From contig JAWQFM010000033.1 of assembly GCA_033442325.1 (NCBI GenBank), positions 413,029 through 477,028 of the forward strand: a stretch of DNA of 64,000 nucleotides, given 5' to 3'. A model generated the notes under the pieces. It was not told the DNA's origin. It saw nothing but the letters and a program-made list of their open reading frames with translations, and searched no databases. The first letter of the stretch is position 1; every line of letters begins with the position of its first letter. The DNA is from Salpingoeca rosetta. Lineage: Eukaryota > Protista > Choanoflagellata. Positions 3,375 to 63,300 of this stretch are shown piece by piece. A program made the translations under genes and the position numbers.

Positions 3375-6300
3375 TCAGCAGTTTAGCACGCGAAATCCGC
3401 TTGTGTTCCTCACAACACGGTTTAACTGCGTACCACCAGTGCCGCGCTGCTGCTGCTGCTGCTGTTGTGTTGAATCATCGTCAGAACGCAACACCGCGCA
3501 AACAGTGTCGTTCTCCAAAACTGACGCGATGGTGGCCAGGCTTTCTGTTGCTTCCTCCAGGCTTCCATCCTCCAATCCAAGCTGCACCAGCGTGTGGATG
3601 CACATCATCTCCTTGGCAGCAGTCTGTCGAGCAATGGCAGTTGTGGTGGCGGTAGTGTGCGTAAGCATGAGAAAGTGTATGTGTGTGTGTATGTGTGTGT
3701 GTGTGTGTGTGTGTGTGTGTGTGTGTGTGTGTGTGTGTGTGTGTGTGTGTGTGTGGAGGGGGGCCAGAATGTCGAGCATCTTGGCTTGTGGCTGCGCGTA
3801 TGATCTGCATCCTGGGTTCACCCACTGCTTTGCACGTGAAGAATTGCCTGCAAGCACAAACCTTGATGTGTTCGGTGGTGGCCTGGGTTCCGGACTGCGA
3901 CGCAACGAGCTTCTGTCGTTCAACATCACATACGCACAACGCAATGTGAGTGAATACGGGAAACCGACGACAGACCCATCAAAACAAGCAAACACAAACG
4001 AAGAAGCACGTCGAAGAATCGCGTACGAGTGCACGCAAATCAAACACACACGCAACACTCACACAATCAAATACACAAATTAACACCACAAGCACAATTG
4101 CCACCAAACACACAAACACACACGCAACACTCACACACCACTCACACAAACACTCATGCAACACTCACACACAATCAAACACAAGCAAATCAAAAATGCA
4201 CTCGTACCTGCAGAGCGCGAATGGCGCGCAGGCGGAGGGGAACAAGGTGCGGATCCGTCAAGTGCTGATGTGATGAGCAGTTGATGAGGTGTGTTAGCAA
4301 CATCAGCAGCGACCAGTCGAGTGTATTCGCATCATCTGCATCATGTTGGCGACTGTGGCGAGCTTCAATGCCCCCGCTGCTCTTGTGGGCTTGCTCGTTG
4401 CCACCTTCATCAGCATCACCATCATCGTCATCGTCATCGTCAAACACGCCGCCGTCGCTGTCATGGTCAGCGTCATCGTCGTCTGTCGTGTCGTCATCGG
4501 TTGTGTCTGCAATCACGTCATATGAGCCCACGTTGTTCACGACGCAGCTGGCAGTGCTGTCTGTGCTACCCCTCGCTGCTCTTTCACCTTCTGCTTCGTC
4601 GCTTGAGCTGAACGCAAACGTGGACTCGTAACTCAACCGCGCCAATGTGTGCGCAGGTAGGGATGACGCGTGCTGTGAAAACCGGCTCGACACCAGCGCC
4701 GCGTAGGACTTGCGGCGATCGCGTCCACTCGCTGTAAGGGCGGACAAATCCTCCACATCATCATCACCATCATCCCCACGATCGTCACCGCGACCATCGT
4801 CATAATCACCACGATCGTCACCACGACCATCGTCATAATCACCACGATCGTCACCGCGACCATCATCATCATCATCATCATCATCATCATGATCTTCGCC
4901 ATCAGCATCAACAACGCCGCGGTGGAAGCTGTCACGGTGGCGGGGATGCTGGTCCTGTACACCATCAGCGCGATCCTCATCGCCTGCATCCATCTCCATT
5001 TCCACGTCATCTGCAGCAGGTGGTGGGCCCTCATCACCGCCACCGCCATGGCGCGTGTCACGATTGTCGTCGCCTTGTTCGCTGTGCAGGCGGTGAAGAA
5101 GGTAGCGGTCGTGTGGTGGCGACAGCTCACGCGCGTGCTTCCGACCACGACCACGACCACGACTGCGACTGCGGGCATGAGAACGCGCGTGATGCGTGCG
5201 TTGGTCGCGTTTGTGATCGCGATAATGATGAGGGTGCGCGCGGTGGTGGTCAAGGTGTGCGTGCTGGTGGCGGTGATGGTGGTGAAGATGATTCTCGACG
5301 TGTAGCTGTTCAACACGCGTTTCATCTTCGTTGTCGTCACCATCGTACCCATCGACACGGGGTCTGCAACCATCATCATGACCATGCCCGTGGTGGTGGT
5401 GACCGTGGTGATGATGAACGTGGTGACGGCCGTGCATGGCTGTGTTCTCTGCCACTTCCGCAGCATCGAGTTCATCATCGCTCTCATCATCATAGTCTGT
5501 GTCGGTTGTTGAGCCAACCTCCACATATCCATCATCGTCATCGTCATCGTAGCCATCAGCGCTGTCATTACGCGCACGGTAAAGGCCTGCCGAGACGTCA
5601 AGCACAGAAGTGTGCACGCTTTCAGCTGTCTGATCTGCTGTCGCTGCTGTTGCACGCGCTCCTTGTGCTACATGCACTGCTTCCACTGTATGCTGGGCCA
5701 CCGGTGCGTGAATGTCCGAGCTTGCAGTGCTGGAGCCACTGCCACGTTGGCTGTCGGTGTTGCGGCTGCGATGGCGGCGACCAAGGTGCAGGTGCGACAG
5801 TCCTTTGCGAAGACCACGGCGAATAGGCGATTCCCCACGCGTGCGCCCGCCCCCGCAAAGTTGTTCTGCGTCACCATCTGCGCCACGCTCAGCCACGCTG
5901 AGCGCGTCAACCATTTCCACCTCCACATCGGTGTCTTCACTCTCGGAGGCGCGGGAGGAGCGGCCGTTAATTGATGATCGAATCATGTGCACAAACCGCG
6001 ACATGCCCGAGCGGGAGCGATGATCTGATGCATGTTTACGGTGCGGGTGTCGCACGCTGCTGCCTGGGCTGCTGGTATTGCTCGCACCCTGGCTGTTGCC
6101 TGCGGTGGGTGCACTGCTCCAATCACCAGACGTGTCCAGCTCGTACACCCCATGCGCTTGCTGCAACACAGTCGTGTTTGGAGACTGTGGGGACGCACGT
6201 GTCACGTCTCGGGTCTCTGCCCCTGCTGTTGTCGTTGCCGCTGATGCTGATGGCGAGAGGGGTGACTTGGTTCGCGCTGCCCTGCTTGCGTGCGAGGAAG

Positions 6301-60300: not shown

Positions 60301-63300
60301 CGATGTGGCAGCACGAAATGTTCTCATCTCAACGGAGGTGACGGCAAAGATTGCCGACTTTGGGTAGGTGAACGCAGTTTTGCGTGTTGATGTGTGTTCT
60401 TTCTATCACAGCTACACATCGGCTTCCGCATCCATCTCAAACATCACAAGTGGTCAAATGCACACTGAATCCTTCATTTCAAGCGCTACCACACCCGCAT
60501 CACACTCCAATCACTCACACTAATCACACACCCTTAATCTCCCCTTTTCATCACACAAACACTCACATGCATGTGCATCTGCAGCCTTACGCGCGAGTCG
60601 AAAGAACACGAAGACTACTACCGGTCGCGTGGCGGTGCGCTGCCTGTGCGATGGACAGCTCCAGAGGTGAAGGGGAATGGCACATTAACTTGAGTTCTGC
60701 TTTGTTTCCTGTCTTGTTTGTTTCGTTTGTGTTGTATTGCAGTTCAGAGCGACGTGCCAGGCTTCCTCCTCTTCCTTCTCCAGCAGCATACTGTCGTTTA
60801 TCACCACCACCACCACCACCACCATTGCGACCATTGCCGTTACTACTGCCATCGCCATCATCGTTAACGCAACAACCCACGACCACACACTCTCATGCCT
60901 GCAGGCACTCGAGTCGCGCAAGTTTGACGAGTCGACGGATATTTGGTCCATGGGCATTGTCATGCATGAGGTGTACACACGCGCAGATACGCCGTACAAG
61001 GGATTCACAAATCAGAAGGTCTGGGTGCAGGTGTGTGCCGGGTACCGCCTCCCACGACCGCCAACGTGCCAACAAGTGAGATATGATTGCGACTGGCCTG
61101 GGTGTTGCCGTTGTTGCTGCTGGTACAGTCACGGATAACAGACGCTTCCGTGGCCTTCCGTGGTGTCATGTTCTTGCGGTGATTCTTCGCTGTCACAGCA
61201 GTCTGCTGGTGGTTTGGAAGCGAGCAGGGAGTGTCCACGTCATTGTCTACACACACACGCGACTTGCCACCACACCTGCTATCACTTACTGCTCACAACA
61301 TCCACGTTGTGACACCACGCAATACCACACGACACCACCTCTCGACTCGCGCTTGACCCAGGTGGTGTATGAGTCGATGCTGCGGTGTTGGGCGGCGGAC
61401 CCGTCGCAGCGGCCGTCGTTCACGGAATTGGAGCAGACGTTCCGAAAGTTGCAGGAAACCAATCTCGCCCCCGCCATTGGAGCACGGCCGTCCCACCACG
61501 CTGACGTCGTACCAAACCCATACGTGCGTCACCCAAAGCGAGGAGAGATGGAAGCGGTCGGTGGTGGTGGTGGTGGTGGTGGTGGTGGTGGTGGATGTTC
61601 GGATGGTGGTTTTTGGCTGCGAGGCCGCGGTGATTGTTGCAGTCGCAGTACAATTTTGTCGTGGTGGCGGTGGTGGTGATTGTGTGAGCTTGAGGCGGAT
61701 CCGAGAGCGCTCGTGTGCTGGCATGCATGTCTCCATCTTCATGTGGCCACAAAGCGTGTGCTGATGTCTTGATGTGGGGCTCATCCATCACACAGGTTGA
61801 CGACCCGACCAACTGCCCGGATAACGACACAGTGGCAGCATACATCGACAACGAACGCATGGCTACGGTGAGAGTGTGCGCGCAAGGGCAGATGTGTTGT
61901 GTGCATACATGTGTTGCGTGCGCGGTTAATGATGGCAAATCACCGTAGTGTGTTCTCATGAGCACATGCTCGCCGTCCTTTCACTGTCAGAACCCCATGT
62001 ACCGAGGGAACCGCAACGTGGCTGCAGCAGCTGCTGCTGCTCACAAGGCGCCACCACCACAGTCGTCATCATCATCGTCATCATCGCGACCAACAGCATC
62101 GGCGCCCCCACGCCCGCCAGTGGCAGAAGAGGAGGTGTGCCTTGTGTGTCTTGTGTGTGTGTGTGTGTGTGTGTGTGTGTGTGTGTGTGTGTGTGCGTGT
62201 GTGTGTGCGTGTGCGTGTGTGTGTTTGAGCCTGTACAGTGTGTGTTGACACACACCCCTCTTCATCCTACTTCTGCAACCCACTTCTCCTGCCCCTCACT
62301 TCTTCACCTCCCTTCTTCGACACGTTCTGTTGTTGAAGCCGGATGCGTACGTGGACATGATGAACGTTGCCGAGGTGAAACTGGAGGCATGCGAGATTGT
62401 GCAACAGCACCAAGAGACAAAACAACATCAAGTGAGTAATGATATGATTCACGCAGAAAAGGTCAATCATGCCGCCGTGTATGTTTCGTGTCCTGTCATG
62501 CATTCTCTGACATAACTGCCCGTGTGTGTGTGTGTGTGTGTGTGTGCGTGCGTGTGCGTGTGTGCGTGTGTGTGTGTGTGTGTGTGTGTTGCTCTGTTTC
62601 GCAGAGTGCACCAACGCAACAGCGAGTGGAGCGGATCGACGAAGAAAAGAATGAGGTGTGCAAGCCTTGACCATGCACAACGCATCACTAATCCCGGCAC
62701 TGTTAATGCTTGAGTAGTTGTGGGCAATCTCCCTCACCATTTCCGTCATTGTCGCCATCAACGTGTTGTTACTGCTCTGAACTGAATGGCAGCAGGAGTA
62801 CATGGACTTGACGGGTTTCATTGAAGTACCGCTGGAGACAGTGAAGGAACCAACGACCACAGAAACGAAGGTGAGGCTTCTCACATGAACTTGTTGCAGG
62901 GATTGACTTGATGTGCATCATCATTGCTTGCTTTTGCTTACTTGTGCTTGCTTTTGCTTACTTGTGCTTGCTTGTTGTTACCTTGCATGTTGTTACCTTG
63001 CTTGTTGTTACCTTGCTTGCTTTTGCTTGCTTGGGGGTGGCGTGTCGTCACTGATTCGCCCTCTGCTATCGCCTGTTGTTGTCCGCATCTGCCTTGTAGG
63101 TTGTTGCCGTTGAAGGGCACACTGCATCTTCGCAACGCTCGGCACAAGCAAGCACACCAGACCAGGTACGTCGCCAACACAGCGAAGAGGTCACGGTGGT
63201 AGGGAGGGTGAACCGTGCAGGAGGTGTTCAGGTGCGACGCTTCCCCCCGTTTGTAACCGGCGTCGGCATCCGCACAACTTCACACCACACGTGGCACGTT

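Follow-up and report, generated by a model that had tools for sequence, protein, structure and literature searches.

Opposed base composition of intron halves and acceptor-proximal AG exclusion in a 64-kb window of the Salpingoeca rosetta genome

We analyzed the introns of five multi-exon genes in a single 64-kb stretch of the choanoflagellate Salpingoeca rosetta genome (GenBank assembly GCA_033442325.1, contig JAWQFM010000033.1, positions 413,029 to 477,028), here called the window and numbered from its first letter. Read in the sense direction, the 5' half of the intron is richer in G+T than the 3' half in 71 of the 82 introns modelled (sign test p ~7e-12), with the same direction in all five genes and on both strands, and AG is excluded from a long zone ahead of the acceptor. 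The original prediction, made from the sequence, had described intron starts rich in GT and intron ends rich in CA in these genes and proposed a microsatellite-based splicing code that might act through a duplex bridging the intron. The polar layout is real. An intron-bridging (GU)n.(CA)n duplex is not supported as a general mechanism. The reading that we favor, and consider an even call, is that the intron body consists of two independent linear domains in which microsatellites are filtered by orientation.

Compositional polarity of the introns

The window has 56% G+C and contains 123 (GT)n and 99 (AC)n dinucleotide runs of at least 8 nucleotides (nt). Intron models (median length 232 nt) were read from the sequence by eye and then passed through a script that required exact GT..AG ends and an open frame along the whole gene. 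An unconstrained gene finder was too noisy for this purpose and was not used; it over-predicted, chained genes across strands and at best recovered 11 of the 13 introns verified by RNA sequencing (RNA-seq). These 13 introns belong to a receptor tyrosine kinase gene, where junction reads, spliced contigs or loose ends confirmed them in + strand transcripts, and 12 of them are polar in the direction given above.

Over the 82 introns, keto skew (G+T-A-C) averages +0.27 for 5' halves and -0.19 for 3' halves, and the signs of the two halves are +/- in 40 introns and -/+ in only one. Along intron deciles from 5' to 3' the profile is smooth, with a drop in G (0.33-0.36 to 0.12-0.16) and T (0.30-0.34 to 0.22-0.25) and a climb in C (0.15-0.18 to 0.39) and A (0.16-0.19 to 0.25). 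The skew is still present more than 100 nt away from either splice site. Once all tandem repeats had been masked, the gradient remained in 68 of 79 introns (p 6e-12); the rule is therefore one of base composition, not of microsatellites. The microsatellites are nonetheless sorted as the original prediction had proposed: 77 of 92 (GT)n runs with at least four units (84%) lie in 5' halves and 72 of 88 (AC)n runs of that length (82%) in 3' halves (Mann-Whitney p 1.5e-19), a polarity inverted relative to that of teleost introns, also as predicted. Among intronic runs of at least 12 nt, 70 of 86 follow the polarity rule, and coding sequence contains none. The pattern is not confined to the repeats, however; the gradient is general and outlasts them. 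The pattern was also said to flip with gene strand, which is true and uninformative; GT...AC is its own reverse complement, so the flip is automatic and + coordinates always read GT and then AC.

The count of five multi-exon genes given with the original prediction holds, and all seven introns offered as examples of the layout exist. Five had exact boundaries (23687-23988, 40777-41251, 42956-43304, 57549-58068 and 3624-4207) and two were slightly off, the start at 49533 being corrected to 49534 and 13631-13920 to 13631-13931. The three acceptors quoted with them are likewise real, and the acceptor at 53951 is RNA-verified. Two phospholipase C introns on the - strand illustrate the two-arm form. 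In 13631-13931, read in sense, (GT)n comes after the donor and (CA)41 leads into the acceptor cacttgcacAG, and the last intron of that gene, 3624-4207 (584 nt), is GT-rich at its 5' end and has (CA)n at its 3' end. The latter is frame-consistent as a single intron. A candidate 33-nt micro-exon within it (~3864-3896, tccggaacccaggccaccaccgaacacatcaag), proposed only by the unconstrained gene finder, would, if real, divide it into a GT-only and a CA-only intron.

Eleven of the 82 introns break the polarity rule. Clear counter-examples are 11753-11927 (-), whose 5' part is CA-rich and whose 3' part is C/T-rich; 62432-62604 (+), where (GT)n lies in the 3' half and adjoins the acceptor; and 37190-37411 (-), which is CA-rich along its whole length and has no GU domain.

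An all-versus-all blastn comparison of the 82 introns argued against an introner or transposon-derived intron family, returning low-complexity matches, one (CAA)n element found in two introns and one 64-nt match. The element, ~180 nt long with a (CAA)n tail, is shared by introns 25953-26274 and 51581-51930 (92% identity over 179 nt, on opposite strands). In the first it lies in the 5' half and is GTT-oriented; in the second it lies in the 3' half and is CAA-oriented. Its orientation follows the polarity rule, a hint of orientation filtering. The 64-nt match (86% identity, mainly CA-rich) is common to the phospholipase C introns 13062-13320 and 11753-11927.

AG exclusion and splice sites

Upstream of the acceptor, the AG-free zone has a median length of 106 nt, or ~48% of intron length, and reaches at least 100 nt in 47 of the 82 introns (57%). 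In the 13 RNA-verified introns it spans 38 to 401 nt. Shuffling each 3' half gave an expected zone of 22 nt, which the observed zone exceeded in 78 of 82 introns (p 1e-14), although this test partly mirrors the clustering of G away from pure CA tracts, and comparison of AG with GA is cleaner. In the 3' domain AG has the lowest observed/expected ratio of all 16 dinucleotides (0.22, as against 0.44 for GA), with 75 AG counted versus 149 GA (p 1.4e-5), and the median GA-free zone is 68 nt versus 106 nt for AG. Together, the recurrence of the layout from intron to intron on both strands and the AG-specific avoidance in the 3' domain support a tie between the polar layout and splicing at the RNA level.

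The base that accompanies C at the 3' end varies among introns. Judged by the last 60 nt, 36 introns are CA-type (A>T), 35 are CU-type (T>A) and 11 are mixed. The last 40 nt are 62% pyrimidine, with 39% C and 23% T, and a run of at least four T occurs in nine of the 82 introns. The earlier statement that a polypyrimidine tract is often lacking therefore fits the CA-type ends, about half of the total; the remainder includes the 35 CU-type ends, and C makes up 39%.

Splice sites conform to the standard consensus, AG|GTRMGT at the donor and YAG|G at the acceptor. Across the 82 introns, donors have G at -1 in 61, a purine at +3 in 74 and G at +5 in 68, and acceptors have C or T at -3 in 77. GTGTGT-type donors are in use at 55772, 25269 and 26348. 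The branch-site-like word CTCAC favors 3' halves, where 37 introns have it, over 5' halves, where 10 do. The closest CTNAY motifs are scattered between 9 and 202 nt from the acceptor and are absent from 19 introns. By their splice-site consensus these are ordinary U2-type GT-AG spliceosomal introns.

Readings of the two-domain layout

Under the reading of two independent linear domains, the 5' domain, a G/U-rich stretch (G ~34%, U ~32%) poor in A and C, would signal that an intron has begun, both as an enhancer within the intron that GU-binding factors or U1 recognize and through a composition unlike that of a 3' site. The 3' domain is G-poor (~13%) and C-rich (~39%), takes A or U as its second letter and is AG-excluded for ~100 nt, or about half of the intron. 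It would serve as an extended polypyrimidine equivalent and as an AG exclusion zone that licenses the first AG thereafter as acceptor. Branch points could lie far upstream, and CTCAC-like branch motifs might sit inside the 3' domain. Slippage-prone two-letter DNA would then expand only in the orientation that each domain tolerates, yielding (GU)n behind donors and (CA)n before acceptors, and the microsatellites themselves would not be the code. The data show the gradient, its persistence without repeats, the AG exclusion and the independence of the two arms; the factors that read the domains and the positions of the branch points are what we infer beyond that.

Several points weigh against this reading. 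The two domains are exact compositional complements (G+U versus C+A), which under independent signals would be a coincidence but would be expected from a hairpin or from a dyad-symmetric process acting on DNA. Five of six stop codons, moreover, have GT-rich sequence behind them even though no donor lies there. The sample is one 64-kb window with 82 introns, of which 13 have RNA support and 69 are frame-consistent manual models, and part of the AG signal in the shuffle test is owed to G clustering as described above.

A stronger form of the same idea is possible but doubtful. It holds that in this lineage a genome-wide two-domain code stands in place of the U-tract, with dedicated GU-binding and CA/C-binding readers, far-upstream branch points, first-AG scanning, microsatellites as bulk material and, in a subset of introns with both arms, an inverted fish-type fold-back. 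Logan contig L002 (positions 1-1774), from a related organism, encodes a RhoGEF 36% identical to that of the window and has an intron at the matching gene position (after ...ELW versus ...EAW) whose long 3' end is C/U-rich and AG-free and lacks a CA arm. Upstream there is another long (CT)-rich tract, and the next intron, GT-rich at its start, runs off the end of the contig. These two introns suggest, from their sequence, that a G-poor 3' domain and likewise a GU-rich 5' domain may predate the CA flavor. The layout looks like an undescribed arrangement of splicing signals; we found no earlier description in the choanoflagellate or protist literature searched, which is not proof of novelty.

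We judge it unlikely that the layout is a generic fold-back device in which any GU-rich 5' arm pairs with any CA-rich 3' arm and so draws the splice sites together, as an inverted version of the teleost arrangement that helps at least the introns with both arms and no U-tract. The idea has real attractions. The GU and CA domains are compositionally complementary, 40 introns are of +/- skew, GT and CA stretches of at least 20 nt at 85% or higher purity occur together in 36 of 82 introns, and the fish precedent is experimentally proven (PMC4691745). Intron 42956-43304 (+) is a textbook two-arm case, with (GT)20 at 43007-43046 and (CA)30 at 43131-43190; its predicted fold pairs both arms, and its minimum free energy of -123.9 kcal/mol lies at z = -3.1 relative to dinucleotide shuffles. 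About 20% of introns fold with z < -2.

Across the sample, however, the arms behave independently. GT and AC runs co-occur no more often than expected by independence in the 82 introns (12 with both, 25 with GT only, 21 with AC only, 24 with neither; odds ratio 0.55, p 0.26), and setting the minimum arm stretch at 20, 30 or 40 nt brought out no co-enrichment either (odds ratios 0.33, 0.92 and 0.67). Rather than growing together, the arms trade off, with a Spearman correlation of +0.43 between half-skews and of -0.36 between length-normalized arm lengths. Duplex energies computed for 81 x 81 arm combinations gave no advantage to an intron's own pair (mean -46.0 kcal/mol, versus -48.1 kcal/mol for foreign pairs; diagonal residual +2.1, p 0.26), and 5'x5' (GU-GU) duplexes were nearly as stable as 5'x3' duplexes (-42.6 versus -48.1 kcal/mol). 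The folding tests excluded the first intron of the RhoGEF gene, which bears an assembly gap. Intron-specific complementarity of the arms, suspected from intron 53248-53487 (gatggtgatggtgg versus accatcaccaccac), failed across introns.

Whole-intron folding pointed the same way. Mean minimum free energy was -62.1 kcal/mol for native introns and -61.3 kcal/mol for dinucleotide shuffles (p 0.23, 77 introns), and -61.0 kcal/mol for half-wise shuffles. Native introns form more 5'-3' bridging pairs than whole-intron shuffles do (25.4 versus 16.6), which favors pairing, but half-wise, composition-matched shuffles form more still (31.1). RNA-verified intron 54171-54417 (+) is polar without dinucleotide repeats, having a G/T-rich start and a CCA/CAC-rich end, and it folds no better than its shuffles (-89.2 versus -90.0 kcal/mol, z = +0.16). 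Moreover, half of the introns have CU-type 3' ends, which are unable to pair with GU, yet their first 80 nt are as GU-rich (0.30) as those of introns with CA-type ends (0.31; p 0.78). One of the signs that the original prediction itself had named as speaking against the bridging duplex, arms that co-occur no more often than independence allows, is thus present in our sample. A fold-back helper can, by prediction, still form in those introns, about one fifth of the total, that have both long repeats, such as 42956-43304.

A largely neutral origin, in which the layout has no function of its own, is in our view distinctly unlikely as a full account. Splice consensus sequences could seed microsatellites (GTGAGT/GTGTGT giving (GT)n, and CACAG giving (CA)n), slippage could spread them and decay could leave the skew behind; alternatively, a dyad-symmetric mutation bias could be centered on exons. 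Such processes would account for the strand symmetry of GT...AC, for the GT-rich sequence found after five of six stop codons, for the wide variation between introns, including the 11 that violate the rule, and for the fact that GTGTGT-type donors are truly used and (CA)n often adjoins the acceptor. They are harder to reconcile with a skew that reaches beyond 100 nt from the donor and from the acceptor and persists after repeat masking, and with orientation to transcription that is maintained on both strands and in five genes. Neither a strand-symmetric process nor slippage predicts that depletion of AG in the 3' domain should be double that of GA, and the shared (CAA)n-tailed element, GTT-oriented in a 5' half and CAA-oriented in a 3' half, also speaks against neutrality. 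Neutral seeding and slippage may nevertheless have contributed to the layout.

Exon-centered definition appears very improbable. Here the unit would be CA-exon-GU, with CA-binding proteins upstream (hnRNP L-like) and GU-binding proteins downstream (CELF- or TDP-43-like) bracketing each exon, including the first and last coding exons. Several exons are short, and the 100-nt stretches ahead of start codons are for the most part CA-rich. In five of six genes the 100 nt behind the stop codon are GT-rich, which partly confirms the caveat attached to the original prediction, that flanks share the skew. The CA-rich stretches before starts, however, resemble the 3' ends of introns in 5' untranslated regions (UTRs), with acceptor-like sites at ~48089, at ~39296 and upstream of 21969, and the GU-rich sequence after stops may be ordinary poly(A) downstream elements. 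The geometry, with short introns (median 232 nt) against several exons of 2 to 6 kb, favors intron definition. Likely 5'-UTR introns, bounded by donor-like and acceptor-like sites and CA-rich toward their 3' ends, were noted at 47900-48089 (kinase gene), 39190-39296 (RhoGEF gene) and 22010-22300 (phospholipase C gene), and the last of these begins (CT)n(GT)40 in sense. Finally, the notion that the 'introns' are intergenic spacers of polycistronic units, as in kinetoplastids, was dropped after the RhoGEF domain and the RNA-seq junctions had been seen.

Genes of the window and their introns

The phospholipase C gene (3375-21969, -) has a 4133-amino-acid model with 26 introns, 24 of them polar, and a PI-PLC-X Pfam match on exon 18856-19112. 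Many of the (CA)n tracts in its introns reach the acceptor AG directly. All 10 introns are polar in the PHP-domain gene (23616-27270, +; 402 amino acids), which carries a weak PHP Pfam match and whose model fitted with zero snapping cost and ends at a stop at 27270. The PHD/SET-type gene (28420-38177, -), a model of 2611 amino acids with a PHD match and a weak SET match, has eight introns, six of them polar and all confined to its 5' end (35066-37980). Its 6.6-kb exon 28420-35065 encodes nearly all low-complexity sequence (polyQ, T/A/S-rich stretches, RD/RE/RS dipeptide repeats and polyP); an odd hydrophobic stretch near the start of this exon could conceal an in-frame intron. The spacer between this gene and the RhoGEF gene contains two divergent tRNA-Gln(CUG) genes at 38461-38533 (-) and 38873-38944 (+).

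The Dbl-type RhoGEF gene (39332-47210, +) gave a RhoGEF Pfam match of 3e-30, and its exon is 25-27% identical to the best named homologues. Its three introns (40777-41251, 42387-42745 and 42956-43304) are all polar, the middle one without a long microsatellite. The assembly gap of 100 N at 40940-41039 falls inside a (GT)n run of the first, flanked by GT repeats at 40880-40938 and 41040-41097; it alters only the length of that intron, and the reading frame across the intron is kept.

The HYR-repeat receptor tyrosine kinase gene (48349-63424, +; 2006 amino acids, with HYR and PK_Tyr_Ser-Thr matches) has 35 introns, 28 of them polar. A gene set that includes this kinase, a Dbl-type RhoGEF and a phospholipase C suggests a unicellular relative of animals. 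Public RNA-seq data for the organism are plentiful; those from two raw-read runs and two contig runs were aligned to positions 51890-57740, a part flanked by repeats of more than 100 nt at 51770-51885 and 57786-57889. The 13 verified introns are 51581-51930, 52067-52230, 52323-52563, 52664-52844, 53248-53487, 53639-53951, 54171-54417, 54568-54919, 55083-55303, 55772-56084, 56156-56477, 56951-57271 and 57549-58068, and the intron at 55444-55676 was revealed by RNA-seq. Two oddities of the reads were noted in this gene. At 55354-55385, within an exon, an in-frame (TCA/ATC)n repeat has a read depth more than 100 times that of its neighbors, with reads in opposite orientation, many backward joints, variable repeat length and C>T at 55375; the likeliest cause of this pile-up is that reads of other transcripts with acidic or serine repeats cross-map here. 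Reads and one contig also join 54339 to 56982 with 12 additional letters (TTCTTGTGTGCG), and with both ends in GT-rich intron this join probably arose as an artefact of repeats or comes from a different locus.

Implications and comparison with known systems

If functional, the layout would be a second, independent eukaryotic route by which simple repeats are sorted to intron ends, with polarity opposite to that of teleosts and apparently without pairing, and long AG exclusion zones would be the norm instead of a rare regulated class. In practice, gene prediction trained on U-rich tracts will mis-call acceptors in this genome, and intron repeats are unusable as neutral markers because their orientation is constrained.

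Intronic CA repeats, bound by hnRNP L, and UG repeats, bound by TDP-43 and CELF proteins, are read by RNA-binding proteins in mammals and alter splice-site use. Those elements have been described as gene-specific regulators, whereas the layout described here extends across most introns of the window, and its readers are proposed.

About 0.6% of human exons have an AG exclusion zone of 100 nt or longer, a sign of a distant branch point and of scanning for the first AG (Gooding et al. 2006; PMC1431707). The same work warns that repeats alone can generate such zones. The human distant-branch-point class is rare and linked to regulated exons, whereas 57% of introns have such a zone here, consisting partly of repeat DNA. 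GC-rich vertebrate introns with weak pyrimidine tracts rely on linear G-rich and C-rich intronic enhancers, and a predicted G/C stem was tested there and proved dispensable (Murray et al. 2008; PMC2481429). The introns of the window, also short and GC-rich, would resemble them in making up for a weak U-tract by linear elements; the vertebrate stem, tempting as it looked, was shown to be irrelevant. The motifs differ, however, being GGG/CCC runs at -30 to -80 in the vertebrate introns and half-intron two-letter domains (GU versus CA or CU) here, with strict order and microsatellite expansion.

A further parallel is with the (AC)m-(GT)n introns of teleosts and lamprey, in which AC lies 5' and GT 3', the repeats are co-enriched and folding of the native sequence exceeds that of shuffles in stability by about a third (Lin et al. 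2016; PMC4691745). As in those introns, complementary dinucleotide repeats occupy opposite ends, the polypyrimidine tract is often obscured and a hairpin is predicted when both repeats are present. Unlike in them, GT runs in the 82 introns of the window lie mainly toward the 5' end and AC runs toward the 3' end, with neither co-enrichment nor excess stability. The teleost class, defined by splicing that depends on arm pairing and not on U2AF2, makes up ~10% of introns, whereas in S. rosetta the composition gradient runs through most introns of the window.

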